Assembly: GCA_002269645.1 (NCBI GenBank)
Contig: NIVC01004708.1
Location: 1-37,351, forward strand
DNA: 37,351 nt
Direction of reading: 5' to 3'
Origin: Macrostomum lignano
Lineage: Eukaryota
Part shown: piece after piece, positions 6,994 to 37,351 of the stretch
Position numbering within the stretch: position 1 is the stretch's first letter
How the letters are laid out: the number at the start of each line of letters is the position of its first letter
Translations under genes and position numbers: made by a program
Notes under the pieces: model-generated
Told to the model about the DNA's origin: nothing
The model's database searches: none
Seen by the model: only the letters and a program-made list of their open reading frames with translations

Positions 6994-9900
6994 GCCACCT
7001 GGCAGGAAAGACTACAGAAAAAATATGCTGAGCATGATCTCCCCAGCTCGGGCAGACATGTTCCAGGATGGTAAGCGAATCTGGCCTAATTAATTGCTTG
7101 ATTACTGAACTCAATCTACCTGCTTATATTTCTGCAATGCTGAACAGACTAATTAATGACTGATAATGCAATTTCATAGTGGCTATGAGATGAAACTCTG
7201 CTGTATGGGGGATTATTGCTCTAGTATTAAGCAAATAGTTTGCCATCTTTTACTCCCTAACAATGGCTACGGCTTTCCCCATTCTTTTTTCATTCCCTAG
7301 CAACTCGCCAGCCGCCCTGAGCCCCCGCCCCAAGCCCAGAAAACATGGGCCGGTGGCGTCTCGGTGCTCAGAGACTGCCAGTCCAGCGCTGACAAATTTT
7401 TGAGGTTTGTTTGCTGTGTGTTTTTTCAACTATGAAAATTTCCAGAGCAGACATCAAATCAGCAATGCTTTGTGTTTCTTTTCTCTTCTTTTTCAAGCGG
7501 AGAGAGAGAGAGAGATGGAGCTGGAGTGCCAATCAGCTGCTGACTGTTCGCTCAGCTCTGCAACAGCGACTGCGGGTTAGCTTGAACTCGAAATTATTGA
7601 GCCCGAAGAATTGTGTGCTTTTTGGATTATGGGGATGGTACCTAAGAGTTAACTCATCATCATAGCCACTAAAATGTGAATTGCATCCTGAAGTATCCGT
7701 TTTAGCCATTGGCCGCTCGTCTACATTTGGCTCCGCGGTGTCGGCCCTGCCGGAGTGCACCAGAGTGTCTTTATCGGCTGCAACCAGTTTTTAGGCTCTA
7801 AAGTTATTAAATTGAATTTGCTAAATTCTACTGTAGCTGAGAAGAAGCTTAACAATTTTGTGCAAATGGTAAACTACAATAACTAGGTATTTTCAAGTCA
7901 GCATTAAAATGAGTTAGTCTATATGTATTTACGAACGTAATTGTTAAATGTTTTTTACAATCTGTTTACTAAATTTCTCTTCCCCCCTCTGCTCCCCTTT
8001 CCCTTCCGCCCCCGAAACTCAACATTGTCCAAAATTTACAGGCGGCAAAACGCCGGACAACAGCCTGCAGACGTATCGAGACATAATGCAGTCACAGGCG
8101 CTGACCAGGCAACAGGCCGAGCTGCGTCAGCAAATGGCGGAGAAGTTCAAGGCTGGCGAGCTGCGCACAGTGATGCCGCAGCAGCAGGAGGCTGCGCCGG
8201 CCAAGAAACGCGGTCGGTGGGACGTCCCGGCCGAGAGCGGAGACACTCCGCAGGCCAAGAAGGTAGATTTTTGTATTTCAGTATGGTTGCTAGGGTGTTT
8301 ATGGGTTTAGTTGTTAGGTGTCTGCAGTGGTTGCTAAGGTGTTTATGGGTTTGGTTGTTAGGTGTCTGCAGTGGTTGCTAGGGTGTTTATGGGTTTGGTT
8401 GTTAGGTGTCTGTGGTGGTTGCTAGGGTGTTTATGGGTTTGGTTTTTAGGTGTCTGTGGTGGTTGCTAGGGTGTTTATGGGTTTGGTTTTTAGGTGTCTG
8501 CGTGCGGTGGTTGCTAGGGTGTTTATGGGTTTGGTTGTTAGGTGTCTGCGGTGGTTGCTAGGGTGTTTATGGGTTGGGTTGTTAGGTGTCTGCGGTGGTT
8601 GCTAAGGTGTTTATGGGTTTGGTTGCTAGGTGTTCAGGGATTGGTTGCTAGGTGTTCAGGGATTGGTTGCTAGGTGCCTGGGCTGGTTGCTAGGTGGCAC
8701 TTTTTACACTAAAGTTTGATCATAAGATATTAAGCTCATGTCAGATAAATGACATAAACGCTAACATGTAATTCTTCCAGACCGGCTTCGAGGCGGATGC
8801 CGGCACCCCGTCGGCCATGTCGGCCAGCGGCTCCGCCACCCCGTCGGCCAGCGTGCGTCAGTGGGCGGAGACGCCCGGCCGCATCAGCGGCGGCGACGCC
8901 ACGCCTGCACCGGGGCAATTCAACGAGCGGCAGTGGGCGGAGACGCCCGTACATATGTCAACTCGGGGTGAAACGCCCGGCCACTTCGACGCCACGCCGT
9001 CAGCTACAACACCAATGGGCCGGCGAAATAGATGGGACGAAGCGACTCCCGGTGGCTGGGGCGAGACGCCGCGCGCGGACCGGACCGCCGCCGACCTGAT
9101 TCAGGAGACGCCGCAGACTGGCAAGCGGCGCTCGCGTTGGGACGAGACGCCCGGCGAGACGCCGTCAAATGTCGCCGACGCAACGCCGAGCGTAGCAACG
9201 CCGGCGTCGGCCACGCCGAGCGGTTTTACACCTGGCGGGGTCATGACCCCAAGCGGGGTGACTCCGATGGGCGTGAAGGCAATGGAGATGGCCACGCCCA
9301 GTGCAGCAGTTGCAGCCGCCGCCATGACCCCGGAGCAGCTGCAGCTATTCTCCGCGCAGAAGGAGCTGGATGACCGCAACCGGCCGCTCTCTGACGAAGA
9401 TCTGGATGCCATGCTACCCGAAGGCTACAAGGTGCTGGCTCCGCCGGCTGGTTATGTGCCGCTGCGAACGCCGCGTCGTTTGACTGCAACGCCGACTCCG
9501 CTGACGACGCCCGGTGGCTTCAAGATGGCCACGCCGGATGTTCGGACGTCTACGGGCACAGCCTTGGCGGATATGCAGCCTAAAGGCACCAATCTGCCAA
9601 TGCTGAAGCCCGACGATATGCAGTACTTCGACAAGCTGCTCACCGATGTTGACGAGGACAGCCTGTCGGCCGATGAGCTGCGGGAGCGTCGTATTATGAC
9701 TCTGCTGTTGAAGATCAAAAACGGCACGCCACCGATGCGCAAATCCGCGCTCCGCCAGATCACCGAGAAGTCCAGAGAGTTCGGTGCCGGCCCGCTCTTC
9801 AATCAGATCCTGCCGCTGTTGATGTCGCCGACACTGGAGGATCAGGAGCGCCACCTGCTTGTGAAAGTGATTGACCGGGTGCTCTACAAGCTGGACGATT

Positions 9901-12408
9901 TGGTGCGGCCGTTCGTCCACAAAATCCTGGTAGTGATTGAGCCGCTGCTCATCGATGAAGACTATTATGCTCGCGTAGAAGGCCGCGAGATTATTTCTAA
10001 CCTGGCCAAAGCGGCCGGCCTGGCAACCATGATCACCACAATGCGTCCGGATCTGGAGAACATGGACGAATACGTGCGTAACACCACGGCCAGAGCTTTC
10101 GCTGTGGTGGCCTCAGCGCTAGGCATTCCCAGTCTGCTATTGTTTCTCAAGGCCGTGTGCAAGTCGAAGCGTAGCTGGCAGGCCAGGCACACTGGTATCA
10201 AAATAGTGCAACAGATTGCCATCCTGATGGGCTGCGCTGTGCTGCCGCATCTGCGCTCTCTGGTTGAAATTATCGAACTGGGCCTGGTTGACGAGCAGCA
10301 GAAGGTGCGAACTATCACCGCTCTGGCTCTGGCAGCTCTGGCCGAGTCCGCCACGCCCTACGGCATTGAGTCGTTTGATACCGTGCTCAAACCGCTATGG
10401 AAAGGCATCCGTACCCACCGAGGCAAAGGTCTGGCCGCTTTTCTCAAAGCCATTGGCTACCTCATTCCCTTAATGGACGCCGAGTACGCCAATTATTATA
10501 CTCGCGAGGTTATGCTCATCTTAATCCGCGAGTTCCAGTCGCCTGACGAAGAGATGAAGAAAATTGTGCTCAAAGTAGTGAAACAGTGCTGCTCCACCGA
10601 GGGTGTTGAGCCGGCTTACATCAAGAAAGACATTTTGCCGTCATTTTTCAAGCACTTCTGGACCCAGAAGATGGCCTCGGACAGGCGGAACTACCGCCAA
10701 TTGGTGGACACCACAGTCGAGATTGCCAACAAAGTTGGTTCGGCAGAGATTCTCAATCGAATTGTGGACGATCTCAAAGAGCCATCTGAGCAGTATCGCA
10801 AAATGGTCATGGATACGGTTGAGAAGGTGCTCAACAATCTGGGTGCCACTGAGGTTGACTCGCGTCTCGAAGAACAGCTAGTCGATGGCGTAATGTTCGC
10901 CTTCTCGGAGCAGACAAACGAGGACGCTGTGATGCTGAACGGCTTCGGCACCCTGGTGAACGCTCTGGGTAAGCGGGTGAAGCCCTACCTGCCCCAGATC
11001 TGCGGCAACATTCTCTGGCGCCTGAACAACAAGTCGGCCAAAGTGCGCCAACAGGTGGCCGATCTCATTAGCCGCATAGCTGGCGTTATGAAAGCCTGCC
11101 AGGAGGAGCGCTTGATGGGCCATCTTGGCGTTGTGCTGTACGAGTACCTCGGCGAGGAGTACCCGGAGGTCCTAGGCTCGATTCTAGGCGCATTGAAAGC
11201 CATCGTGAATGTCATCGGGATGAACAAGATGACGCCGCCAATCAAGGATCTGCTTCCTAGGCTGACGCCTATTCTAAAGAACCGGCACGAGAAAGTGCAG
11301 GAGAACTGCATCGACCTGGTTGGCCGCATCGCCGACCGCGGCTCCGAGTTCGTCAGCGTCAAGGAGTGGATGCGCATCTGCTTCGAGCTGCTCGAATTGC
11401 TCAAGGCGCACAAGAAGAGTATCAGACGGGCCACAGTTAACACGTTCGGCTACATTGCCAAAGCTATTGGTCCGCATGATGTGCTGGCAACTCTGCTCAA
11501 TAATCTCAAGGTGAGGCCGATATTGCTTGCTTACCGAGACACTTTGTACTTGAATATTATGTAGCTCGAGGCCTACGACTACTCAATTCCTGTAGCTAAT
11601 ACTCGTATATGTTAAATCATACCATTAAGTTTTCTTTTCTTGGAGTGTCCCCGTTTTTTGTTGTCTTCTAGCTACTTAATAAGTAGTAAGTTGATAAAAT
11701 ATGGTTTTTTTCTGAGTAGTTGAGAATCGCCATCTTTAAATCTCGTCTTAAAACAGAATCAAAGAATCGCTGTTTCAACCCCATCCAACCCATCCGCAGG
11801 TGCAAGAACGCCAGAACCGTGTCTGCACAACAGTGGCCATCGCTATTGTCGCTGAGAACTGCTCGCCGTTCACCGTATTGCCTGGCCTAATGAACGAGTA
11901 CCGCGTACCTGAGCTCAACGTTCAAAACGGTGTACTGAAATCGCTTTCATTCATGTTTGAATACATCGGCGAGATGGGCAAGGACTACGTTTACGCGGTG
12001 GTCCCTCTGCTGGAGGACGCCCTGATGGACAGGGACCTCGTGCACAGGCAGACAGCCATGTTTACCATCGGCCACATGGCTCTGGGTGTGTACGGTTTCG
12101 GCTGCGAGGACGCGCTCACTCACCTGCTTAATTTTGCCTGGCCAAACGTGTTTGAAACATCGCCGCACGTTGTGCAAGCATTCATGTCCGTTGTTGAAGG
12201 CTGCCGGGTCAGCCTGGGCCACACCCGGGTGCTGCAGTACTGCCTGGCTGGCCTGTTCCATCCGGCTAGGAAGGTGCGCGACATGATGTGGAAGGTGTAC
12301 AACACAGTATACATTGGCAATCCCGACTGTTTGGTCAGCGGCTATCCCAGCGTACCAGACGACGATAAGAACAGTTATAAGCGGCACGAACTCTTTTATG
12401 TCCTCTAA
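6994..12408 (+). CDS. SF3B1: Splicing factor 3B subunit 1 (SF3b155), 5'-partial, spliced
   Basis: Exons 6994-7070 (..[12 protein letters not shown]), 8042-8262 (GGKTPD..KRGRWD), 8781-11510 and 11800-12408 (TAA). All have GT..AG boundaries with matching phases. The protein has RWDETP motifs, TP repeats, the [18 protein letters not shown] p14-binding region and near-invariant HEAT repeats ([48 protein letters not shown]). Roughly the first 100 residues were not found. Confidence 0.98.
8281..8696. repeat. G/T-rich ~44-bp minisatellite in SF3B1 intron, ~8 copies, degenerating to shorter units
   Basis: Unit gtggttgctagggtgtttatgggtttggttgttaggtgtctgc(a/g), starting just after the 8263 donor. Confidence 0.9.
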
Positions 12409-12540
12409 CAATTATTATTATGTTACAACTAATGGTAGAAAAACTACTTGGAGTAGGGGTGTGAGAAAAACGTTGCTGATTGTATTTTATGTATTTAGTG
12501 GCAAAAAAATGTTTTAGTTCACCCTGTTCCTCATGCTGTC

Positions 12541-13609
12541 CAGTTTAATAAATTTTCCTTTAAAAACCCGTTGATCACTACTAGTGCCCGATATTTATCG
12601 CCTCCTAAAGTTGAAATGTTTTTATCAATTAAGCATCATTGCTATCCAGTTTAATAAATTTTCCTTTAAAAACCCGTTGATCACTACTAGTGCCCGATAT
12701 TTATCGCCTCCTAAAGTTGAAATGTTTTTATCAATTAAGCATCATTGCTATCCAGTTTAATAAATTTTCCTTTAAAAACCCGTTGATCACTACTAGTGCC
12801 CGATATTTATCGCCTCCTAAAGTTGAAATGTTTTTATCAATTAAGCATCATTGCTATCCAGTTTAATAAATTTTCCTTTAAAAACCCGTTGATCACTACT
12901 AGTGCCCGATATTTATCGCCTCCTAAAGTTGAAATGTTTTTATCAATTAAGCATCATTGCTATCCAGTTTAATAAATTTTCCTTTAAAAACCCGTTGATC
13001 ACTACTAGTGCCCGATATTTATCGCCTCCTAAAGTTGAAATGTTTTTATCAATTAAGCATCATTGCTATCCAGTTTAATAAATTTTCCTTTAAAAACCCG
13101 TTGATCACTACTAGTGCCCGATATTTATCGCCTCCTAAAGTTGAAATGTTTTTATCAATTAAGCATCATTGCTATCCAGTTTAATAAATTTTCCTTTAAA
13201 AACCCGTTGATCACTACTAGTGCCCGATATTTATCGCCTCCTAAAGTTGAAATGTTTTTATCAATTAAGCATCATTGCTATCCAGTTTAATAAATTTTCC
13301 TTTAAAAACCCGTTGATCACTACTAGTGCCCGATATTTATCGCCTCCTAAAGTTGAAATGTTTTTATCAATTAAGCATCATTGCTATCCAGTTTAATAAA
13401 TTTTCCTTTAAAAACCCGTTGATCACTACTAGTGCCCGATATTTATCGCCTCCTAAAGTTGAAATGTTTTTATCAATTAAGCATCATTGCTATCCAGATT
13501 AATAAATTTTCCTTTAAAAACCCGTTGATCACTACTAGTGCCCGATATTTATCGCCTCCTAAAGTTGAAATGTTTTTATCAATTAAGCATCATTGCTATC
13601 CAGATTAAT
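12541..13609. repeat. Tandem array, 106-bp unit x10, near-identical
   Basis: Unit starts (cagtttaataaa/cagattaataaa) at 12541, 12647, 12753 ... 13495, with a terminal partial unit at 13601. Period is exactly 106. Confidence 0.97.
12547..12552 (+). promoter_or_regulatory. Putative SF3B1 polyadenylation signal (first of 10 tandem copies)
   Basis: First AATAAA about 140 nt after the SF3B1 stop codon, inside unit 1 of the 106-bp array. Confidence 0.55.
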
Positions 13610-13642
13610 ATTACGTCGTATATTATTAAGGCATCTGTAAAC

Positions 13643-14105
13643 CACAGATACTAGAATAACTAGATGGGCCACTCAGCACATTTGCATGTAAGCTACTTTC
13701 AGCTCAGTAGTAAGTTAAACTGAAGCATTTTAATGTATTTTTGAAGACAAGTCTCATTTATTGGCTCTTACCACCCTCATGGGCCCCCCAGTTTAAAACC
13801 TTAAACCGCGCCTTTCTACACTGCCCCCCGCCCCGCCCCAATTTTTATTGTATTCCTCGGAATTCCAGCCTAAAGCTGCCATGTACATTTCAGTGGACTG
13901 GCTAATGTACATTATTGCTAAACCAATTAGCAAATTCTTTACGACTGCAAGCTTGGGCTTCTAAACTTGTTAGTCGTTTCAGCTGCCTTTTTTATAAAAT
14001 AGCCTAAATGCATTCTTCTTTGCTACTGAACTGAAAGTAGAAAGCTGATATACTATGTAAGATATATATGCCTGAGTGGCCCATCTGGTTATTTTAGTAT
14101 CTGTG
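13643..14105. mobile_element. Non-autonomous DNA transposon (MITE), 463 bp, ~34-bp TIRs, 8-bp TSD (hAT- or P-type)
   Basis: Left TIR cacagatactagaataactagatgggccactcag (13643-13676); right TIR ctgagtggcccatctggttattttagtatctgtg (14072-14105), 2 mismatches. Identical 8-mer ctgtaaac flanks both ends (13635-13642, 14106-14113). Confidence 0.9.
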
Positions 14106-14229
14106 CTGTAAACCGGCTGGCATGTAAGCTAGCTTTATGAGGGACGATAGAAAAGCTGTCACTGGGAATATTAACTGGAAACAAATTAAACACCAATGCG
14201 ATTGTCAAACGTCCTGAACATTTCCATCC

Positions 14230-15082
14230 AAGTTTCCATGCAGTTGACACGTACTTGACGCAGCAATCGGCACTTAACTGCCTTCTAAATACCACTCCTC
14301 ATCCTGGTGTTTGCACCACTGGTTCACTGAGGAAGCCAGCCCAGTCACTGGAGCTCAGTGTTGGCCCAGCAGCGAATTCTTTAAAGTTGGAAACAGAAAT
14401 CCGACGGAGGCAAGGAAATTGCACGGTGACCTTGGTGACCTTACCACAAGCCTATTCTCTTTGATGGCCCTGAGCTGGCGCAATGTGGCGTAGTGCACTC
14501 AATCTGCAGCACTCTGTCGATCCCAGAAAATATTGCTCATTATTTTCTTCCTCGATGACACTACACTGTCTTGGCCTTCAGCAGAGTGGCTTCATCGTAG
14601 CGCTTCCACTGCATACTCTAGACTTTAGCCTCCGACTCATGAAGGGATAACAATAAATGAGAACAAAAGTCTGGATAGAGTCCAGAAACTTGTGTCTCGG
14701 CGATACTGCATCAGGTGGAGCAGCTGTTGGCATGCTTGTACCTACTTTTGGCACCAACCTGGCACAATTTTGACATTCCAAGTTGGATGGTCAGGATGGA
14801 CTGCGCACTGCCATAGTTGATGCCACAGGCTTCTGCTACTTCAGCCTGTCTTCGTCTGACATGCTCAACGGCAGTCTGGCTGGTGGTAGAGGTCCTTAAG
14901 TCGCCCACTGCGTGGTTCATCAATCCATCAGATGATGCCGCAGCTTCCATGGGCTTCGATTTCTTTCGAGATGAAAAGAACTACGAGATCTTGAGCTGAG
15001 AAGGTAAAGCTACAAAGTTTTCCCAAGTATGGAACAATGTGTGTTTGTAGTAACACCTGAAATCAAATTTTAAAAACTTCCA
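14230..15082 (-). mobile_element. Decayed Tc1/mariner (mariner-type) transposase pseudogene
   Basis: Minus-strand fragments in the expected order: DEPRSGR, VAEACGINYGSAQSILTIQLGMSK (HTH), CARLVPK (WVPK-like), FLDSI, SMQWK, KIMSNIFWD, AIKENR, FLFPTLKNSLLGQ, VNQWCKHQDEEWY. Multiple stops and frameshifts. TIRs not identified. Confidence 0.85.
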
Positions 15083-15379
15083 TGTACTGAAAAAATTAGC
15101 AGTGACAACCTTTTTGATCATCTCTCGTACCTGCCAACTTATATTCCAGTGAAGAACTTGTCTGAGTGTGCAACAATAAGTGCATCGCCACCTGTCTCAA
15201 ATTGTATGTCTAATCGTTTAATAAATATATGTGCACTGCATAGGCACGGCTTCAATGCACATCGTTGCCGAGATTTTGGCTATAATCAGCCATGCTTAAA
15301 AATTTTAAATTAATTAATTTCAACAGAGTCAATACTGGAAAAACTCCTGTTCAATTTTTTGCAAGAAGTAAAATAAATT

Positions 15380-15385
15380 TTTATT
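15380..15385 (-). promoter_or_regulatory. Putative polyadenylation signal of the neuropeptide precursor
   Basis: tttatt on plus (AATAAA on minus) about 200 nt downstream of the TGA at 15584. Confidence 0.45.
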
Positions 15386-15583
15386 TTTGGGAATTCGTCG
15401 CAGTGCGCTGGTGTCTGATTTTCTAAAGCGGGTCTGCTCTTGCGACTGTATTTGACGAAGTTCTTATCTTTTTGCTAGACTTATTTGCTTTTTTAAGTTC
15501 TTAAGTTTAAGTTTTTAAGTTTAGCGTATTCGTTTTTTAATTCTAAATCTTTGCGAATTCTCGGACGCAACCAAGAATATTGT

Positions 15584-16588
15584 TCAGTCACGAATCTTGT
15601 TCTCCTTGCTTGAAGCGAAGGAGCCGCTTCGCTTTCCAAGAAGTCCAGAGTACATAGCTCGCTTTCCAAGAAGTCCGGAGTACATATCTCGCTTTCCAAG
15701 AAGTCCAGAGTACATATCTCGCTTTCCAAGAAGTCCGGAGTACATATCTCGCTTTCCAAGAAGTCCAGAGTACATATCTCGCTTCCCGAGCAGTCCAGAG
15801 TACATCGCTCGCTTCCCGAGCAGTCCAGAGTACATCGCTCGCTTTCCGAGCAGTCCAGAGTACATCGCTCGCTTTCCAAGCAGTCCAGAGTACATCGCTC
15901 GCTTTCCGAGCAGTCCAGAGTACATCGCTCGCTTTCCGAGCAGTCCAGAGTACATCGCTCGCTTTCCAAGCAGTCCAGAGTACATCGCTCGCTTTCCAAG
16001 CAGTCCAGAGTACATCGCTCGCTTTCCGAGCAGTCCAGAGTACATCGCTCGCTTTCCGAGCAGTCCAGAGTACATCGCTCGCTTTCCGAGCAGTCCAGAG
16101 TACATCGCTCGCTTTCCAAGCAGTCCAGAGTACATCGCTCGCTTTCCGAGCAGTCCAGAGTACATCGCTCGCTTTCCGAGCAGGCCGGAGTACATTGCTT
16201 TCTTTCCAAGAAGTCCAGAGTACATATCTCGCTTTCCAAGAAGCCCGGAGTACATCGCTCGCTTCCCGAGCAGGCCGGAGTACACTGCTTTCTTTCCAAG
16301 AAGTCCAGAGTACCTATCTCTATTTCCAGAATTAGCTTCTCGCTTTTTCGATTGTGGAACAATAGCGACGTCTTCCAATCCCTCAATTAGCTTTGAATCG
16401 TCTTCCTCCTGCGGCAGCAAAGCTTTAATTGGGATAGCAATGGGCTCCGAGCGCTTGCCGAGAACGCCAGAGAAAATGCTCCGTCGGCTGGTCGATCCGG
16501 CTTCGTCAGTCGGTAATTTTTGTGGCATCGCGTCACCAGTTCCCCAGACCATCGGCATTAGCAGAAACAGGCACAGCTTGAGCATCAT
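15584..16588 (-). CDS. Multi-copy amidated neuropeptide precursor (xxYSGLLamide), 334 aa, intronless CDS
   Basis: N-terminal hydrophobic signal peptide (MMLKLCLFLLMPMVWGTGDA), RR-SIFSGVLG-KR, an acidic spacer, then 23 units xxYSGLL-G-K[R/K] (16 AM, 5 DM, 1 AV, 1 DR). Gly plus a dibasic site is the canonical amidation/prohormone-convertase signature. Variation among the 30-bp units is largely synonymous in this frame. Confidence 0.95.
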   Translation of the reverse strand: MMLKLCLFLLMPMVWGTGDAMPQKLPTDEAGSTSRRSIFSGVLGKRSEPIAIPIKALLPQEEDDSKLIEGLEDVAIVPQSKKREANSGNRDRYSGLLGKKAVYSGLLGKRAMYSGLLGKRDMYSGLLGKKAMYSGLLGKRAMYSGLLGKRAMYSGLLGKRAMYSGLLGKRAMYSGLLGKRAMYSGLLGKRAMYSGLLGKRAMYSGLLGKRAMYSGLLGKRAMYSGLLGKRAMYSGLLGKRAMYSGLLGKRAMYSGLLGKRAMYSGLLGKRDMYSGLLGKRDMYSGLLGKRDMYSGLLGKRDMYSGLLGKRAMYSGLLGKRSGSFASSKENKIRD

Positions 16589-17593
16589 AGCAGACGGGGC
16601 CGGCTCTGCATGGATGAAATGTTCAATGTGCTCGTAAGAATCTACGCTAGTAGAGGTGTGATTTCTCTTGTGTTTTATATTTTTATCCCGTAGATTCTTA
16701 ACATTTCTATATTGTAACGAGTGTATTAGCTACACTCAATTTTTTGAGCGATGAATGAAAAGAAAACTGTGTCTTATCTATCAAAGCCTCATCTAGAGCT
16801 GTGCTCGGATACGGGATTGTGTTCCGCTAGCAGAATTCTTAAAATCGATCCTGTCGTGCTCTGCTAGCAAACAACTGCTGTTTAACAGCGATTGCTTGCC
16901 TGGGAACATTCCTGCCAACTGGGTACTGCAGTCTGCCGTATGGATGCCTCCTGTGACCTGTAGGATAACTTCCCATGCAGGCAGCTCCACCTGAGCTTCA
17001 CCTGAATATATCTATTGTCTATACTCGTACGAATGAAACCTTGCTCGCAGAACTCGCTCTCTAGTTGCTGCTGCTGCCTATCTTGAGTCGACTGCCATGC
17101 AGTCTGTACCCGCGGCCCCAACACCTGCATGATTCATAAGAAGCCAAGTCGTTTTGGCGATGTTATTGCTGTCTTGTGCCCAAATGACTCCAAAATGGAA
17201 TTTTATAACGGTATCTTATTATCTGCTTCTGTCTGTGGCTTTGATTGAAAAGCAAAGGCATAACTTTAGGAAGAAATGCAAGGCTATGGCCGATTCGGTA
17301 TCCGGGATATTCATAATTCAAAGGTGGAAATGCACGTGTTCTGATGCAGTGAAAGCAATAACATTCTGATTTCTTGGCATTGCTCAACCATAAAAAAGTT
17401 GCCGCGCTGTAGGCTTCGACATAAATGTGATTTTTATCACCATTATTGAGGCTAATGCGTCCTGTTTTGCGGACATTAACTCGCGTTGCCAGCAATAAGG
17501 CGGATTAATCAATCTGCTACCGCATAGCTACCGAAGAAACCCGCTGGGGACATCTACGGTTATAATTTCCGTCGGGGCCGTTAGGGCACTCAC

Positions 17594-17880
17594 CGGGCCA
17601 AGGCGATCGTGTGCAGCGGCTGAACGGATGGCTGGCTGTCAATTTGTTCCTTTTAGTTCTCTTCTGTTTCGTCCCTTCTTTCACTTAGCTAGCTGGCAGT
17701 CTTCGTTTGCGAGTGCTGGTCCGAATCAGAGCGAGCGACAGGAGTTGCACTGAGAGTGGAGCTTGAGTCGGAGGTCTCCTCTGCATATAGAAGTTGTCTC
17801 TACCTGCAGTGCAGCAGGAATCCGACTGCACGGTAATGCTAGATATTTATACAGAAATCGGCGGCAATCCGATTGGCTGC
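17594..17880 (-). promoter_or_regulatory. Putative promoter and non-coding first exon of the neuropeptide gene
   Basis: On minus: CCAAT (17876-17872), TATAAATA (17851-17844), donor CCG|GTGAGT at 17593, and acceptor catgcag| at 16606, 17 nt upstream of the ATG. Motif-based inference only. Confidence 0.4.
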
Positions 17881-18102
17881 AACCTGTCATGCAGATGCAG
17901 CTGAGGACAATGCAGCTCACAGGAGTTCGAATCCGCATTGGATGCTGTCTGCTGAGAAGCTCTACAGGAGAAAGGAGTAACAAGGATCGGATAGATAAGA
18001 TATGAATTAATGAATGAGAGAAAAGATAAGACAAGAGCGATACATGTAAGACAATGGAGAAGGAAACAGAAAGAAGAGAGCTGAGAAAAGATGTCAATCT
18101 TG

Positions 18103-18192
18103 AGCGGGCCGGGTTGCTATATTGGTGAAGTTTCAAAGGACCCGAGGGCCGGATAGAGATCGGCTTCGCAGGCCGGAGTTTGCCGACCCCTG
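18103..18192. mobile_element. Solitary hAT (Charlie-like) transposon end
   Basis: ...gggccggat...gcaggccggagtttgccgacccctg (ends 18192) is the reverse complement of the typical CAGGGGTCGGCAAACT hAT terminus, with GGGCCGG subterminal motifs. Partner end not found. Confidence 0.7.
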
Positions 18193-18209
18193 CTCAAGGA
18201 CAACTCAAG

Positions 18210-18817
18210 GGTAAATGTTTTGAAGGCAAGCCGAAAAATACACTACAGGGATAGGAGGTTTTAATTTTTTCAGCACAAAAATTGTTATTGCTTTCGATAG
18301 GAGAAAGACCCAATGTTCATCTTTTGATATGTTGTGCCTTTCTTATAGCTCTATTGATATTCATAAAGCATTTGTTCAGAAAATTAGGATTCAATGTTCA
18401 ATTCTTATTCTACGTACATTTGCATGTCTCCTGTGCCTAAAAATCATTAAAATGGCACGGCTCAGCTCATTGGTTTTATGAATCCATTTTGTTATTCTTA
18501 GCTGACTGTGTAACAATATGTGTAACAGAGATGATAAAATAGATTCATAGAACCAAAGTTTGGAGCAGTGCCATGCATTTTTTTATTTTTAGGTACAGGA
18601 TGTACGTAGAATAAAACATTAGCATAGAATCCTAATTTTCTGAACAAGAAGCTTCATGAATATCAATAGAGCTAAAAGAAAGGCACAGCATATCAAAAGA
18701 TGAACATTGGGTCTTTCTACTATCGAAAGCAGTAACAATTTTTGTGCTGAAAAAAATTAAAACCTCCTATCTCTGTAGTGTATTTTTCGGCGAAAAGTTG
18801 CCTTCAAAACATTTACC
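18210..18817. mobile_element. Fold-back / MITE-like element: ~235-bp inverted arms with ~140-bp spacer
   Basis: 18210-18444 (ggtaaatgttttgaaggcaa...tgtgcctaaaaat) pairs with 18585-18817 (atttttaggtacag...ttgccttcaaaacatttacc) over nearly the whole arm, with scattered mismatches and indels. No TSD seen. Confidence 0.85.
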
Positions 18818-19055
18818 ATAGATTTCGAGTGTTGCGTCCTTCCATATTGTATTTTTGATTCTATTTTGAAGAAGAAGCGACTCTGAATTTGGCTTTTACT
18901 TTTTGCCACCACTGATTGACTGGCTGCTTCGTGACTGCATCTTTGTGAGAAACGTATTTGATTTGTCTATGGTCGGAATCAAATGGCCTAAGCCTATAAT
19001 GTCTATCAATCAGATGGGATGCCCCCGAAAAATAAGATATCGAAGTTCATATATG

Positions 19056-19160
19056 ATAAACGCCGCTTAATTCACCATAGTCTGTGGTTAGAATATCCTC
19101 GGCTACAATCAATGGTCCTCGGACATTCTAACCACAGAATGTGAATTAAACGGCGTTTAT
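19056..19160. repeat. Short palindromic hairpin (~42-bp stem, ~22-nt loop)
   Basis: ataaacgccgcttaattcaccatagtctgtggttagaatatcc versus the reverse complement of ggacattctaaccacagaatgtgaattaaacggcgtttat. Confidence 0.8.
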
Positions 19161-19281
19161 TATTTAAATATATGTTACTTGAGTAGTCCTTGCCCCTGCT
19201 CTATTAGGTAAACTAGCTATATAGTAATCGTCCGACTTTCTTGTTGATTTCGGAATAACAATTGGGAGGATTGCTTTTTGG

Positions 19282-19615
19282 GGGGCCGTAGCCCAGCGGT
19301 AGCGCAGCTGCTCTGGTGTGCCAGCGACCCAGGCTCGATTTCCAAGTGCAGTTACATAAATTGGGGCTGAATTGGAATCTCGGCTTAGCTCTGCTCGTGC
19401 AATTAACGGCCTTGAGAGCCAACCCCCCAAGGCGCGGTGAAGTGTACATGCCTAACGATAATATAAAGTTAGGGCCGCTGTACACTCCTGTGTGAGTGTG
19501 TGCCTGCGTACGTATCCGCGCGCTTGTATGCCTGCTCAGGGGAGTCGGCGGAATGGGCAGTAATGCCTCTCGCCGGTTGTGTGCCCATGTCGCTTAAAGT
19601 GCGCCAGGGTGCACA
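19282..19615 (+). mobile_element. tRNA-derived SINE-like element, copy 1
   Basis: tRNA-like head ggggccgtagcccagcggtagcgc (A box), then ggctcgatttcc (B box, 19332-19343), followed by a body shared with copy 2. Confidence 0.65.
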
Positions 19616-19747
19616 CAACCCCCTGCCTCTAATAAGATGATTGCTTTTGTCTGTTGGATTTTACGAGTAGGTTGGAGCGAAAGTTCTTCAAATTGATATA
19701 AAAATACCCCTAAGACTAAATAAGCAATCTGCAACATAGAATGAGGG

Positions 19748-20040
19748 AGGGGGGCAGAGCAACTCAGCGTTAAGCGCTTCTGACTCCCGCTCCTACTGCT
19801 TCGATTCCGGGTGCACGCGCGGCTTGATCGTTGATCAGGGATTGTGTACCAAATTTGGTCCGGGGCTGTCGATCGGGCGATTCACACCCATTGAAGGCCA
19901 ACCCTCCGCAAGGCACAAGAAGAGTAGATCATGTATGACGATTATAGAAAGTCAGGGCCGCCAGCTGTACACCCCGTGTGAGCGTGTGAGCTCGGTAGTC
20001 GGGTGCACTCATGCACAGCCCTCCTGCGAATAGCGAATAG
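19748..20040 (+). mobile_element. tRNA-derived SINE-like element, copy 2 (diverged)
   Basis: B-box-like gcttcgattcc (19798-19808). Shares gccaaccc..caagg, acgat(a/t)ata..aaag..agggccgc and ctgtacac.cc.gtgtgag.gtgtg with copy 1. Confidence 0.55.
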
Positions 20041-20157
20041 AATTAGAGCCACAGACTAAAAAGCTTAAAAACTAAATATAAGTCAAACAGATACTCTAGA
20101 AAGTAGCGAAACGTTAAGAGTTTGCAGTTGAAAGAACTCATTGGAATACGGACAAAA

Positions 20158-20568
20158 ATGAAGTCATTACATAACTCGAAGAGCTTCATCATCATCTGCA
20201 TGACAGCTATCCAGACTCTCAATAAGTCCGTCTGTCTGGCCGACGAGATTTGCTACGAAAATTTCCTCGGCCAGGCGAACCTGTCCTACCTGTGTCCGAC
20301 CTACTGCTGCGGCGAGGCCACCACCTATCCCCACCCCTTTCTCTACTGCTGCGACGTCTGCTCTCACAGCTATTATCGCAATGAGAAACTCGTCACCTGC
20401 TATCCGGACATTGTCACGCACCACAGCACAATGAGAATCCTGTTTATGCTGTCGTTTAGCCTTGTGCAGGCCTGCCTGGTCAAGGCGACCCTCACCAACC
20501 TGATGCAGATTGTTTCTAGGAATAACGACATGACGGCCGTCGCTGGTCGACAGGACAGTCCGAATTGA
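20158..20568 (+). CDS. Small Cys/Tyr-rich putative single-pass membrane protein (Shisa/CYYR1/VOPP1-like cysteine pattern), 136 aa
   Basis: GC-rich, coding-like ORF in AT-rich flanks. It has a moderately hydrophobic N-terminus (SFIIICMTAI), C-x13-CPTYCCG-x11-CCDVC, and a hydrophobic segment ILFMLSFSLVQACLV. Candidate acceptor tttgcag at 20127; AATAAA at 20834. Confidence 0.65.
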   Translation: MKSLHNSKSFIIICMTAIQTLNKSVCLADEICYENFLGQANLSYLCPTYCCGEATTYPHPFLYCCDVCSHSYYRNEKLVTCYPDIVTHHSTMRILFMLSFSLVQACLVKATLTNLMQIVSRNNDMTAVAGRQDSPN

Positions 20569-22601
20569 CGCTATTATTATAGCTTCACACTGACCAGACG
20601 TTCGCGATTGTTTGAAATTTTGAAACGTGTACAGTAGTAAAGATACTCGATCATACAAATTGATTCTCCGCACTAATTTTTTTCCATTTGCTTTTTTCAT
20701 TCTTTTGTACTTTAGGCTGCAAGTACGATAATTATTTACATGTACATGTAGCTAGTTAGTTATAACAAATTTCATATCGACATACTAGATCGTATGATGA
20801 TTATATACATGTAATTCTATGACATCTTTTCATAATAAAATAATAAAAAATGCTCCTAATTGTAAAATCGATTCTTTGACGCAACAAAGTTTTTCTGGAA
20901 ATATATATAGAACACGAATAAAGAGGCCCATTTAAAATGACCAAAAACTATGGGTTTAAGCTTTATTGATTTGCATAAGCAGATTTTTCAACTGAAGATA
21001 TGATACAGCTAGCTAGGGGACCTTTTCTCAACAGCCTGCATGCATTCAGCGCCATGCAGTGAATCATTTTAAATGTATCATCATTTTTCACGCAATTAAA
21101 ATCTGCTTTCTGAAGAAATAAAAGTATTCATCGATCGTCATAGAGGCGCTCCTGTGGATTCTACCTCGTAGAAGTTTTGCTTCTCCTAAAAGCAGCAAGC
21201 ATTTTTGAGCATGCGCGCTCTTTAATGAAGAAAAAATTGCGACAGTTTCATTGCTTCCTCACAAACCCCTAAAACGCCTCCGCTTTGTCTCTAGTCAAAC
21301 ATTCATTTTTTCATCCTGTGCAGCAGCAACAGAAACTGGTGTCACCTGGGCAAATACTGTACTGAGCTGTTTGACATTGCTGGTGCTTGAAGCTAATTGG
21401 CCTATGCAGCTGCCAACCTGCTGTGCGACTTCTTCAAGCCCCGTATGGCTCTTTTCTCATGCAGTCGATCCGTTAAAATACGACTGCTGTATGACATTCA
21501 GCTCGTGCATGCGGGATAAAACCCATGCATACAGCTGTGTGTATCTGAACTTCGGGGTAAGGAGAAATCCAGCGGTTCATACATGTAATTAACGGTGGAC
21601 AACAGCAGGCGTGTGTAATGTTGCCACCTGCGCGAATTTCACCATCGCCTAATATGGTATTTACAGAATAAGGTAAAAAAGTGCTAAAAAATTCAACCGT
21701 ATAATTATACGAGATCCCTAATAGCCCTCATGCGAGATATACATTAAAATGTGTTATGATTATTATTTAATTATTTCGTACACAAATGATATCAAAACTA
21801 TATGCACTAGCTCCCTAACCAAGCAGATTTAATATAATGAACATCCCTACTAACTTGCACTAGGAAACCCATGGTTACATGCAGTATATATACACTGTAA
21901 ATTGACGCCGCGCGAAGCGATGATGATGCAGTCAAATTGTAGAATTAAAAAAATTATTGATGCAAAATCCAAATACAAAATTTACATGACAAGCATATGT
22001 GCAAATTAGACGGGTAAATTTCATCTGCAGGCATTTTTATTTTTGCCCTGTTTCTATTCTGATTCTGAATTCTTCGGGCCGGGGAGTTCTGCCAACAAGT
22101 CAAAGATCGTGCTCCGATTGAGTTAACAGTATATGAGAGCAACGAATTTTATTTTTTTACTTTTTAGTGCCATGTATATATGACAAGTAATTAAGCCTAC
22201 AATTAAGCCTACTAATTTTAAGCTGAGGTCCCGGTATCTGGAAGTTTTTACTGTTAAGACCTTGACGTTAATATAGTAGTAAAACAAAACTTAAGATGTA
22301 GTAAGTTAAACTATTCATTCTAATAATAGTTCTTACACAGTTGCGCAGTTAATTTTGCTATTCAATCAAAAATAATTTTTCTAAAAACAAATAAGTATTT
22401 CAAAACTAATGTAAATAGTTTTATTTTATTTGAAAGAACTTCATAACATTTTTTTCGGATAAATCTGTACCGTTAAACAGTTATAATTTTTTTAGGATTC
22501 AGTTGAAATCCGCACGATATTAAATAAACTTTACTGAATTGAAAACTGATTCAAAATTTTTTTTATTAACCAAACCGTATTAATTCAAAAATAAAATAAC
22601 G

Positions 22602-30011
<7,410 letters not shown>

Positions 30012-34464: not shown

Positions 34465-37351
34465 ATGGCGCCAGTGATTCGGCCTATGCACGGATCAGCT
34501 GATTCTGCTATGCAACCAGGTGAGTTTCAAGTTTAGTAGCATTCAGCTAAACCTACTCGGGTCCTTTGGAATTTACAACAGCAATCCGGCCCGCTCCAGG
34601 CTTGCGTCTCTTCTCAGCTTTCTTCTCTCTAATAATCTCCTCTCTTTTCTCTCCTCTTCTCTTCTCTCCTCTCATCTCTCTCGTCTCTTTTCTCTTCTCT
34701 TCTATCCTCTCCTCTCTCGTCTCTCCTCTCGTATCTCCTCTCTCGTCTCGCGTCTCTTCTCTCCTCTCCTCTCTCGTCTCTTTTCTCTTCTCTTCTATCC
34801 TCTCCTCTCTCTTCTATCCTCTCGTATCTCCTCTCTCCTCTTCTCTATAGAGGAGATATATAGTTTGTTAGTTAGTCATCACTGTCCTGAAAAGGGGTTC
34901 CTAAACCTTTACTTCGTATTCGGGCTCAAGTGAGGTCTGTAAATGGGACTGTATCGATTAGTCAAGTTTGGCTGTGGCATGGCCAGTGCTCAGGGGGCTT
35001 GCATGTAACAGCTGAGAGTCGCACTACCCATCCCGCAGTGAGTCTGGGCGGCATGAGCATCGGGGCGGTCGTGGCCCTGACCGTTGGCGCCGTGTTCGCC
35101 GTCGCCGGGCTGGCAACCTACGGCTACAAGTCGCTGAAACGCCGTCGCGAAGAGTCGCCCGGCTTCCGCCTGTCCAGCGTCATCAAGCGCAGCCTGGCCG
35201 AGGAGGGCCGGGCCCAGAAGATCAGCCGGAACCTTTCGCTGCACAACCAGCAGCAGCGCCAGCAGCAGCAGCAGCAGCGGCAGGGCGAGTCGCCGACAAC
35301 CCCGGACGCGCTGCAGATGATGTCCGAGGGCAACTCGCCGGTGTCCGACACGGGACCGCAGGCGGAGGAGGCGGCCGGCAATCTGGGCAGTTTGACCTTC
35401 TCTGTTCTGTACGACAAGTGCAAGCAAACTCTGCTGGTGACCATCGTCCGCTGCGAGGACCTGCCGGCCAAGGACGCCCACCTGGGCTCCTCGGATCCTT
35501 ACGTGAAGCTGCAGCTGCTGCCGGAGAAGCGGCACAAAGTGAAGACCCGCGTGCTGCGCAAGACCTGCAGCCCGGTGTACGAGGAGACGTTCAGCTTCTA
35601 CGGGATGCGCCCGGCCCAGGTGAAGTCCGCCAGCCTGCACTTTGTTGTGCTGAGCTTCGACAGGTTCTCGCGCGACCACATCATCGGGGAGGTCCTGTTC
35701 CCCATGGGCGAGACCGAGACGGACGACCTACTGAGCGTGACCAGGGAGATTCAGCCGAGGCAGTTCAAGGTGCTTGGCTTGTTGCGTTCTCTTAACTCCA
35801 TAGTTTATTCCTTTTCTCAGTACGAGCGATCTTGAACCATCTTTAGCCATTTAACCGCTTAGCCATTTTAGCGCTTCTCTCAGTAACTTTAGCCATTTAA
35901 CCATCTCAGTAACTTTAGCCATTTAACCGTCGCTTATCTCAGTAACTTTAGCCAGTTAACCATCTCAGTAACTTTAGCCATTTAACCGTCGCTTATCTCA
36001 GTAACTTTAGCCAGTTAACCATCTCAGTAACTTTAGCCATTTAACCGTAGCTTATCTCAGTAACTTTAGCCAGTTAACCGTCTCAGTAACTTTAGCCATT
36101 TAACCGTCGCTTATCTCAGTAACTTTAGCCAGTTAACCATCTCAGTAACTTTTAGCCATTTAACCGTCGCTTATCTCAGTGACTTTAGCCATTTAACCGT
36201 CGCTTATCTGAGCATCTTTAGTCTAGCGCTTCTCTCAGTAACATTAGCCATTTAACCGTCTCTTATCTCAGTAACTTTAGCCAGTTAACCATCGCTTCTC
36301 TCAGTAACTTTAGCCATTTAACCGTCGCTTATCTCAGTAACTTTAGCCAGTTAACCATCTCAGTAACTTTAGCCATTTAACCGTCGCTTATCTCAGTAAC
36401 TTTAGCCAGTTAACCGTCTCAGTAACTTTAGCCATTTAACCGTCGCTTATCTCAGTAACTTTAGCCAGTTAACCATCTCAGTAACTTTAGCCATTTAACC
36501 GTCGCTTATCTCAGTAACTTTAGCCAGTTAACCATCTCAGTAACTTTAGCCATTTAACCGTCGCTTATCTCAGTAACTTTAGCCAGTTAACCGTCTCAGT
36601 AACTTTAGCCATTTAACCGTCGCTTATCTCAGTAACTTTAGCCAGTTAACCATCTCAGTAACTTTAGCCATTTAACCGTCGCTTATCTCAGTGACTTTAG
36701 CCATTTAACCGTCGCTTATCTGAGCATCTTTAGTCTAGCGCTTCTCTCAGTAACTTTAGCCTCTTAACCGTCGCTTATCTCAGTAACTTTAGCCATTTAA
36801 TCGTCGCTTATCTGAGCATCTTAAGCCCAGCGGTTATCTCAGTAACATTAGCCATTTAACCGTCTCTTATCTCAGTAACTTTAGCCAGTTAACCATCGCT
36901 TCTCTCAGTAACTTTAGCCATTTAACCGTCGCTTATCTCAGTAACTTTAGCCATTTAACCGTCGCTTATCTCAGTAACCTTAGCCAGTTAACCATCGCTT
37001 CTCTCAGTAACTTTAGCCATTTAAATGTCGCTTATCTGAGCATCTTTAGCCTAGCGGTTATCTCAGTAACTTTAGCCATTTAACCGTCGCTTATCTCTTA
37101 TCGCTGCATCATTATCTCTTTATGAGTGTCTGATTTTGAAGCTGTATTTTGCCTGATCTGCAAATAATTATCGCTCGCTTATGCCGGACTATAAGAAACC
37201 AGCCTCAATTCCCGAAATTTCGCACCAAACCCAGGTGAAGAACCAGAACCGTGGCGAGCTGCTGGTGAGCCTGTGCCACCAGCCTGCGGCTAACCGTCTG
37301 ACCGTTGTTGTGCTGAAGGCCCGCAACCTGCCGAAGATGGACGTGACCGGA
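34465..37351 (+). CDS. SYT4: Synaptotagmin-4/11 family protein, 3'-partial, spliced
   Basis: Exons 34465-34519 (MAPVIRP..), 35039-35769 ([24 protein letters not shown]; C2A with [25 protein letters not shown] and LSFDRFSRD) and 37235-window end (C2B start [34 protein letters not shown]). Phases match. The Asp-to-Ser change in 'LSFDRFS' is the Syt4/11 hallmark. Confidence 0.93.
34620..34848. repeat. CT-rich low-complexity tract, SYT4 intron 1
   Basis: Almost purely pyrimidine ctct/tctc variants. Confidence 0.9.
35840..37092. repeat. Compound minisatellite (26-bp and 33-bp units alternating), SYT4 intron 2
   Basis: cagtaactttagcca(g/t)ttaaccatct alternates with cagtaactttagccatttaaccgtcgcttatct; unit starts include 35881, 35907, 35940, 35966, 35999. 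Confidence 0.95.

Follow-up and report, generated by a model that had tools for sequence, protein, structure and literature searches.

The stretch analysed here (the window) comprises 37,351 nt of contig NIVC01004708.1 from the flatworm Macrostomum lignano (assembly GCA_002269645.1). The open reading frame (ORF) at 15584..16588 on its minus strand is a complete, intact single-exon M. lignano gene for a multi-copy proneuropeptide. Our reading as a whole is that this is a functional multi-copy proneuropeptide gene, that its product would be processed to amidated peptides of the buccalin/allatostatin-A (AstA) type and that these would act on a G protein-coupled receptor (GPCR) of the AstA/galanin type. 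We give this statement a probability of about 0.6. The parts of it differ in strength and are graded separately below.

In the ORF list of the window, the frame has 334 aa plus a stop and begins with MMLKLCLFLLMPMVWGTGDA. The ATG at 16588 is the earliest start codon after in-frame stops. From the N- to the C-terminus, the precursor consists of a hydrophobic N-terminus, a propeptide ending in RR, the unit SIFSGVL-GKR, an acidic spacer, an extended first unit, 22 back-to-back units and a 14-residue tail. Acidic spacers are typical of proneuropeptides. The features of the gene are located as follows:

15584..16588, minus strand: precursor coding sequence (CDS), 334 aa plus stop, single exon; from the ORF list, with the start at the first ATG after in-frame stops
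16529..16588, minus strand: signal-peptide-like N-terminus, aa 1–20, with n-region MMLK and h-region LCLFLLMPMVW; from hydropathy and the (-3,-1) rule
16481..16528, minus strand: short propeptide, aa 21–36, with RR at its end; from the translation and a map of dibasic sites
16451..16480, minus strand: lone unit SIFSGVL-G-KR, predicted product SIFSGVL-amide; from the unit parse
16340..16450, minus strand: acidic spacer SEPIAIPIKALLPQEEDDSKLIEGLEDVAIVPQS-KKR; from the unit parse
16289..16339, minus strand: first tandem unit, N-terminally extended, EANSGNRDRYSGLL-G-KK; from the unit parse
15629..16318, minus strand: 23 tandem 30-nt units xxYSGLL-G-K[R/K] (16 AMYSGLL, 5 DMYSGLL, 1 AVYSGLL, 1 DRYSGLL); from Tandem Repeats Finder, the unit parse and codon analysis
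15587..15628, minus strand: C-terminal tail SGSFASSKENKIRD; from the unit parse
16674..16679, minus strand: TATAAA, a candidate TATA box by its position, 86–91 nt upstream of the ATG
15380..15385, minus strand: AATAAA, a candidate poly(A) signal by its position, ~200 nt past the stop

With the lone SIFSGVL included, the precursor holds 24 units of the form xx[Y/F]SG[L/V]L-G-[KR][KR]: AMYSGLL 16 times, DMYSGLL five times, and AVYSGLL, DRYSGLL and SIFSGVL once each. All of them (24/24) end in Gly followed by a dibasic site, which is GKR in 22 units and GKK in two. Tandem Repeats Finder reported a 30-bp array at 15629..16313 with 22.8 copies and 92% matches. At the N-terminus, the Kyte–Doolittle means over nine residues were 1.7–2.6 for aa 1–8 and below 0 by aa 15. 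The h-region spans aa 5–15, and the (-3,-1) rule gave three candidate cleavage sites (after G16, G18 or A20). The N-terminus appears to have the n/h/c layout of a signal peptide and is hence termed signal-peptide-like.

The 23 tandem units were encoded by 11 distinct DNA sequences but gave only five distinct peptides. Eleven nucleotide columns were variable. Five of these lay inside the YSGLLGK core; 5/5 were third codon positions, and all changes there were silent. The other variation was found only at residues 1–2 (A/D, M/V/R) or as K/R swaps at the cleavage site. Departures from the unit consensus were synonymous in 33 cases and non-synonymous in 10 cases when read in the coding frame, and there were 0 synonymous departures in the other two sense frames. 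The variation among the tandem units is thus supported as a codon-level signature of purifying selection on the peptide, not as that of a DNA repeat. Besides the splicing factor gene SF3B1, the precursor ORF was the only ORF of the window with at least three G[KR][KR] sites.

An array of this kind might also be a non-coding 30-bp minisatellite that is open in one frame by chance. The window does hold many minisatellites that yield long spurious ORFs in several frames, and three frames are open across the array; silent-only core variation, however, was seen in the precursor frame only, and the G-dibasic spacing is perfect. A homologous copy on contig NIVC01003891.1 carries a frameshift, but this came about by the loss of 1 nt from an AAA run, and the later units are still in phase. 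The homologous locus also has a transcript-based gene model. Moreover, the minisatellite explanation does not cover the non-repeat N-terminus with its signal-peptide-like segment, the separate and divergent SIFSGVL unit or the diverged paralogue PAA58165.1, which retains the same peptide end. It is strongly disfavoured, and we regard its probability as negligible.

Further candidates over the array were rejected. ORFs of 297 aa and 346 aa, antisense or in an alternative frame, showed 0–1 synonymous changes or mirror-image wobble only, and had no signal peptide and no cleavage sites. A Pfam ITAM match (1.7e-25) was an artefact of the 23 YxxL repeats, with 0 individually significant stretches, and a Pfam Phage_Gene33 match was below its own cut-off. 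Besides the artefactual ITAM match, no Pfam domain was found in the precursor. The Rfam scan of the window gave no matches.

An exhaustive HMMER search of the protein collection gave 521 proteins at E < 0.001, and the best 150 were inspected. Match P0121 is a protein of 180 aa that is 99% identical to precursor residues 1–180. It is GenBank PAA49395.1, which is annotated as a truncated "hypothetical protein, partial". The exact-sequence look-up of the full 334-aa protein returned no record. The precursor gene is already in GenBank as this unnamed truncated protein, and the window gives the full-length intact version.

The corresponding contig, NIVC01003891.1 (L001), belongs to the same assembly (GCA_002269645.1) and is colinear with window 27210..8884 over 16.6 kb, at 94–98% identity. 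It is the same locus or a recently duplicated homeologue; ~180 Mb of the assembly are in blocks of at least 95% identity. The array of L001 has 16 units vs 23 in the window, and its first tandem unit reads DMYSGLL where the window has DRYSGLL. Loss of one base from an AAA run (GGAAAGCGA to GGAAGCGA, L001 10570-10600) shifts the frame after the 11th unit, so that the protein ends at 180 aa. The model PAA49395.1 is truncated and "partial" because of this frameshift. Past it, five more units and the same C-terminal tail follow in phase. Rather than an old pseudogene, the frameshift suggests an indel error of long-read sequencing or a lesion of very recent date. The differences of L001 reflect either copy-number variation together with an assembly error in the homopolymer, or a homeologue that was disabled only recently.

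The 270 nt of non-repeat CDS were 100% identical between the window and L001, and the 300-nt flanks on each side were ~94% identical. The chance of 0 differences in 270 nt ranged from P 0.16 to 3e-5, depending on the flank rate chosen. The GenBank annotation of GCA_002269645.1 was built solely from RNA sequencing and transcriptome evidence plus TransDecoder. As the annotation comes from transcripts only, the PAA49395.1 model is indirect evidence of a sense transcript.

A second M. lignano "hypothetical protein, partial", PAA58165.1 (BOX15_Mlig014178g1), was found by the same HMMER search. Its genomic ORF lies on NIVC01002405.1 (L002) at 12721..13275 and comprises a signal peptide (MLTLKLFRLVMAVQCCLLLGALIGCCDA) and 13 units. 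Most units are AG[Y/F]RGLL-GKR; GAYYGLL, GPYHRLL and RVYQRLL also occur. The two genes have in common the signal peptide and the tandem 30-nt units. Their consensus units agree at 21/30 nt; the 15 nt that code for L-L-G-K-R (CTGCTCGGAAAGCGA) are the same in both. They differ in that PAA58165.1 has Arg at -4 (Ser in the window gene) and Gly at -6 (Met in the window gene), 13 instead of 24 units, another genomic locus and no acidic spacer. Variation in its unit core, too, is silent and at third positions only, the Y/F swap excepted. Judged by their units, the window gene and PAA58165.1 are true paralogues from one ancestral unit. A possible third relative, P0148, has GS[M/L]RGLL-GKR ten times and lies on a 976-bp environmental JGI contig. 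The annotated PAA58165.1 model has extra upstream exons outside the signal-peptide ORF.

The original prediction had described a secreted polyprotein that starts with a signal peptide and is processed at Gly-dibasic sites. Its unit counts (16, 5, 1 and 1 tandem units and one SIFSGVL) were matched exactly by our independent unit parse, and the signal peptide was borne out as signal-peptide-like by hydropathy and the (-3,-1) rule. The polyprotein itself is supported by the N-terminus, by the G-[KR][KR] ends in 24/24 units, by the signature of purifying selection, by the transcript-based model and by a paralogue of the same architecture. From these features of the predicted protein, it is very probable that the precursor is a bona fide secreted precursor of multi-copy amidated peptides.

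The processing would follow established prohormone biology. The signal peptide would lead to co-translational entry into the endoplasmic reticulum and would then be removed. Prohormone convertases would cut after RR, KR, KK and KKR, a carboxypeptidase would remove the basic residues, and PHM and PAL would turn the exposed C-terminal Gly into an amide. The predicted yield per precursor is 16 AMYSGLL-NH2, 5 DMYSGLL-NH2, 1 AVYSGLL-NH2, 1 (EANSGNR)DRYSGLL-NH2 and 1 SIFSGVL-NH2. Two of these predicted products, AVYSGLL-NH2 (16259-16288) and SIFSGVL-NH2 (16451-16480), are isobaric ([M+H]+ 721.424), and mass alone cannot separate them. The calculated [M+H]+ of the two major products is 753.396 (AMYSGLL-NH2) and 797.386 (DMYSGLL-NH2).

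The closest described peptide is the M. lignano "buccalin-like" npp-9, GAYSGFL-G, which PMC9114394 quotes from McVeigh et al. 2009. In the quoted form, npp-9 comes from the same species and has the Y-S-G-x-L-amide core and the same amidation Gly; the single difference is at -2 (F in npp-9, L in the window gene). No GAYSGFL or YSGFL unit was found when the window, L001 and L002 were scanned in all six frames. The window gene and the quoted npp-9 therefore appear to be siblings, unless npp-9 came from another copy.

Mollusc buccalin is of AstA type. Its motif is given as "GxLamide" and is seen in Biomphalaria (FXGGIG, RLDRFGFAGQL-amide) and in scallop (..FFGSL-amide, ..FYGSL-amide). In the precursor, 24/24 units carry an aromatic residue at -5 (Y in 23 units, F in one) with G at -3 and L at -1, in agreement with the mollusc [F/Y]-x-G-x-[L/I]-amide. 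The PAA58165.1 units and npp-9 also conform to this motif. As in buccalin and AstA precursors, multi-copy amidated L-amide peptides lie between dibasic sites, and arthropod AstA Y-S-F-G-L-GKR units align with the window units at 6/8 positions. The arthropod hallmark Y/F-x-F-G-L/I-amide is absent from the precursor, in which positions -3/-2 are G-L or G-V. Buccalins are usually 8–13 residues long and diverse within a precursor, whereas the window gene encodes near-identical heptamers.

On balance, the motif favours a buccalin/AstA type for the window peptides. By their predicted units, the window gene, the AG[Y/F]RGLL gene and npp-9 form a small M. lignano family of [Y/F]-x-G-[L/V/F]-L-amide precursors. 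As far as the short peptide ends indicate, these genes most likely represent the buccalin/AstA type in flatworms. The original prediction could not assign the peptides to a named family. Through npp-9 (GAYSGFL-amide) and the motif, a tentative buccalin-like assignment is possible. The prediction had pointed to the LASGLV/I-amides, which proved a poorer fit, and more loosely to buccalin/AstA, which held for the mollusc motif in 24/24 units. It had also not recognised the product as a described peptide. While the literature search found no YSGLL, the near-identical npp-9 peptide has been described, and a truncated GenBank entry exists.

The best 150 of the 521 HMMER matches were mostly other multi-copy precursors with a 10-residue G-K-R periodicity. 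They included arthropod xMGSEFL-GKR (GSEFLamide), AstA xPYSFGL-GKR, myomodulin xMLRL-GKR and FxxWx types, as well as unrelated low-complexity proteins. HMMER cannot discriminate between these families because all share the G-K-R periodicity. Most of the matches (GSEFLamide, AstA, myomodulin, FxxWx and repeat proteins) reflect periodicity and linker only and were not accepted as orthologues. The best non-self matches were GSEFLamide (EFLamide) precursors, with 55–66% identity across the array (A-M-x-S-x-x-L-G-K-R). Identity with this family was rejected as well: the E-F-L core is absent, with G-L-L in its place, and the likeness consists of the linker, the periodicity and the A-M prefix. Proteins with 'AYSGVLGRT' were discarded as relatives; they have no signal peptide and no dibasic sites.

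A word-indexed protein search, with the full precursor and with a profile of the real repeat segments, gave no matches, though the collection includes PAA49395.1 and PAA58165.1. As both are present and were missed, such nulls on tandem-repeat proteins are not evidence of absence. No relevant paper turned up in the full-text literature search for YSGLL, SGLLamide and related strings, and neither an SGLL nor a GLLG peptide is contained in the planarian peptidome paper.

These searches bear on a different view of the family, in which the amidated precursor is genuine, but the [Y/F]xGLL-amide family is specific to Macrostomum or to flatworms. The likeness to buccalin/AstA would then be convergent, and the receptor would lie outside the AstA/galanin clade. 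Among the best 150 of the 521 HMMER matches, there was no homologue outside M. lignano, bar GS[M/L]RGLL-GKR on the 976-bp environmental contig. HMMER is unable to separate the families, short C-terminal motifs converge easily and many flatworm npp families are reported to be flatworm-restricted. We nevertheless consider a flatworm-specific family rather unlikely: all three constrained buccalin positions are matched in 24/24 units, AstA-type receptors are present in flatworms and an AstA/buccalin precursor has been reported in polyclads.

Another possibility is that the window gene is orthologous, in flatworms, to the spiralian LASGLV/I-amide family. The end S-G-L-[L/V/I]-amide is common to both, and scallop precursors of this family are highly multi-copy too (11 YxxxSLASGLI-amide peptides). 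In these peptides, however, L-A stands at -6/-5 and the length is ~12 residues, whereas the window gene encodes heptamers, mostly with Met at -6. An L-A-[S/N]-G-L-[V/I]-amide end on peptides of ~12 residues was not found in the 24 units. Position -5 is always aromatic in the window gene (Y in 23 units, F in one) and also in PAA58165.1. As to the distribution of the family, a 'LASGVamide' precursor was reported in a polyclad flatworm, beside a separate AstA/buccalin precursor, and one survey recovered the family as mollusc-restricted. Orthology to the LASGLV/I-amides is unlikely.

A third alternative concerns the role of the peptides. The precursor could come from non-neuronal secretory cells (gland or reproductive), with peptides that act outside the body or in the mate as an allohormone, a pheromone or a defensive substance. 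Snail buccalin precursors embed a love-dart allohormone, buccalins occur in mucus, and the hermaphroditic M. lignano secretes many reproductive proteins. But amidated heptapeptides in at least 20 copies, split by G-K-R alone, are the standard neuropeptide layout, and the sibling npp-9, as quoted, came from a neuropeptide survey. A secretory role of this kind is therefore highly unlikely.

Several points weigh against the reading of the gene as a buccalin/AstA-type neuropeptide precursor. AstA precursors were matched in the HMMER search (e.g. P0138, 1e-23), but GSEFLamide and myomodulin precursors score equally well or better. The family assignment comes from a single five-residue motif, and the S-G-L-[aliphatic]-amide end of the window peptides also fits the LASGLV/I-amide family. 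Transcript support is indirect and stems from the L001 copy with its 1-nt frameshift and fewer units. As a sign of conservation, the zero differences in 270 nt are only suggestive, because P depends on the flank rate used.

If the buccalin/AstA assignment holds, the peptides would act on an AstA/galanin-type GPCR as neuromodulators, probably of muscle or feeding. The Y-S-G-L-L-amide end is invariant and the N-terminus of the peptides is variable, as expected if the C-terminus is the receptor-binding part. Going by the peptide ends, the receptor of the window peptides is most likely a GPCR of the AstA/galanin clade. Both S. mansoni and F. hepatica are reported to have receptors of the AstA/galanin/kisspeptin clade, with no known endogenous ligand. 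It is possible, though doubtful, that the YSGLL-, [Y/F]RGLL- and YSGFL-amide genes are the surviving ligand family for flatworm AstA/buccalin-type receptors, expanded in an early-branching flatworm and lost in planarians and parasites. If this is true, AMYSGLL-amide would be a natural agonist scaffold for the orphan receptors of schistosomes and liver fluke. Because parasitic flatworms keep AstA-type receptors without a known ligand, the window peptides are obvious candidates for deorphanising them.

The window thus gives, intact and at full length, a neuropeptide gene with a very high number of peptide copies from a model flatworm in which transgenesis is possible. The public record holds only a truncated, frameshifted "hypothetical protein". 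The buccalin-like flatworm peptide of 2009, as quoted, can now be placed in a family of at least three genes. The precursor is likely to be a strong marker of one peptidergic cell population, and its upstream region is a candidate promoter. The understanding of neuropeptide precursors in general is unchanged by this gene.

Other features of the window were recorded as well. SF3B1 (splicing factor 3B subunit 1) lies at 8817-12408 on the plus strand, with two very large exons of 915 aa and ~200 aa. The larger one (8817..11564) shares 99% identity with M. lignano UniProt A0A1I8H332, which places the window in this free-living flatworm. At only 89% identity, a second M. lignano SF3B1 copy is in keeping with the hidden polyploidy of the species. 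Directly downstream of SF3B1, and before the neuropeptide gene, a 106-bp tandem array of 10.2 copies with 99% matches occupies 12534-13610.

A small Cys-rich ORF at 20122-20568 on the plus strand has a signal-peptide-like N-terminus and a hydrophobic C-terminal segment. It matches no Pfam family; its counterpart in L001 (6022-6432) is a transcript-based gene model of 136 aa. The region 24400-29450 is dense in 15–18-bp minisatellites and shows a strong GC skew and long open frames in several frames. The stretch homologous to it carries an annotated 571-aa gene with a weak MORN match. At 34930-35835 on the plus strand, there is an exon with a transmembrane segment and a C2 domain (Pfam C2, 5.9e-24), which is synaptotagmin-like. 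Past this exon, a 33/59-bp tandem array takes up 35872-37097.

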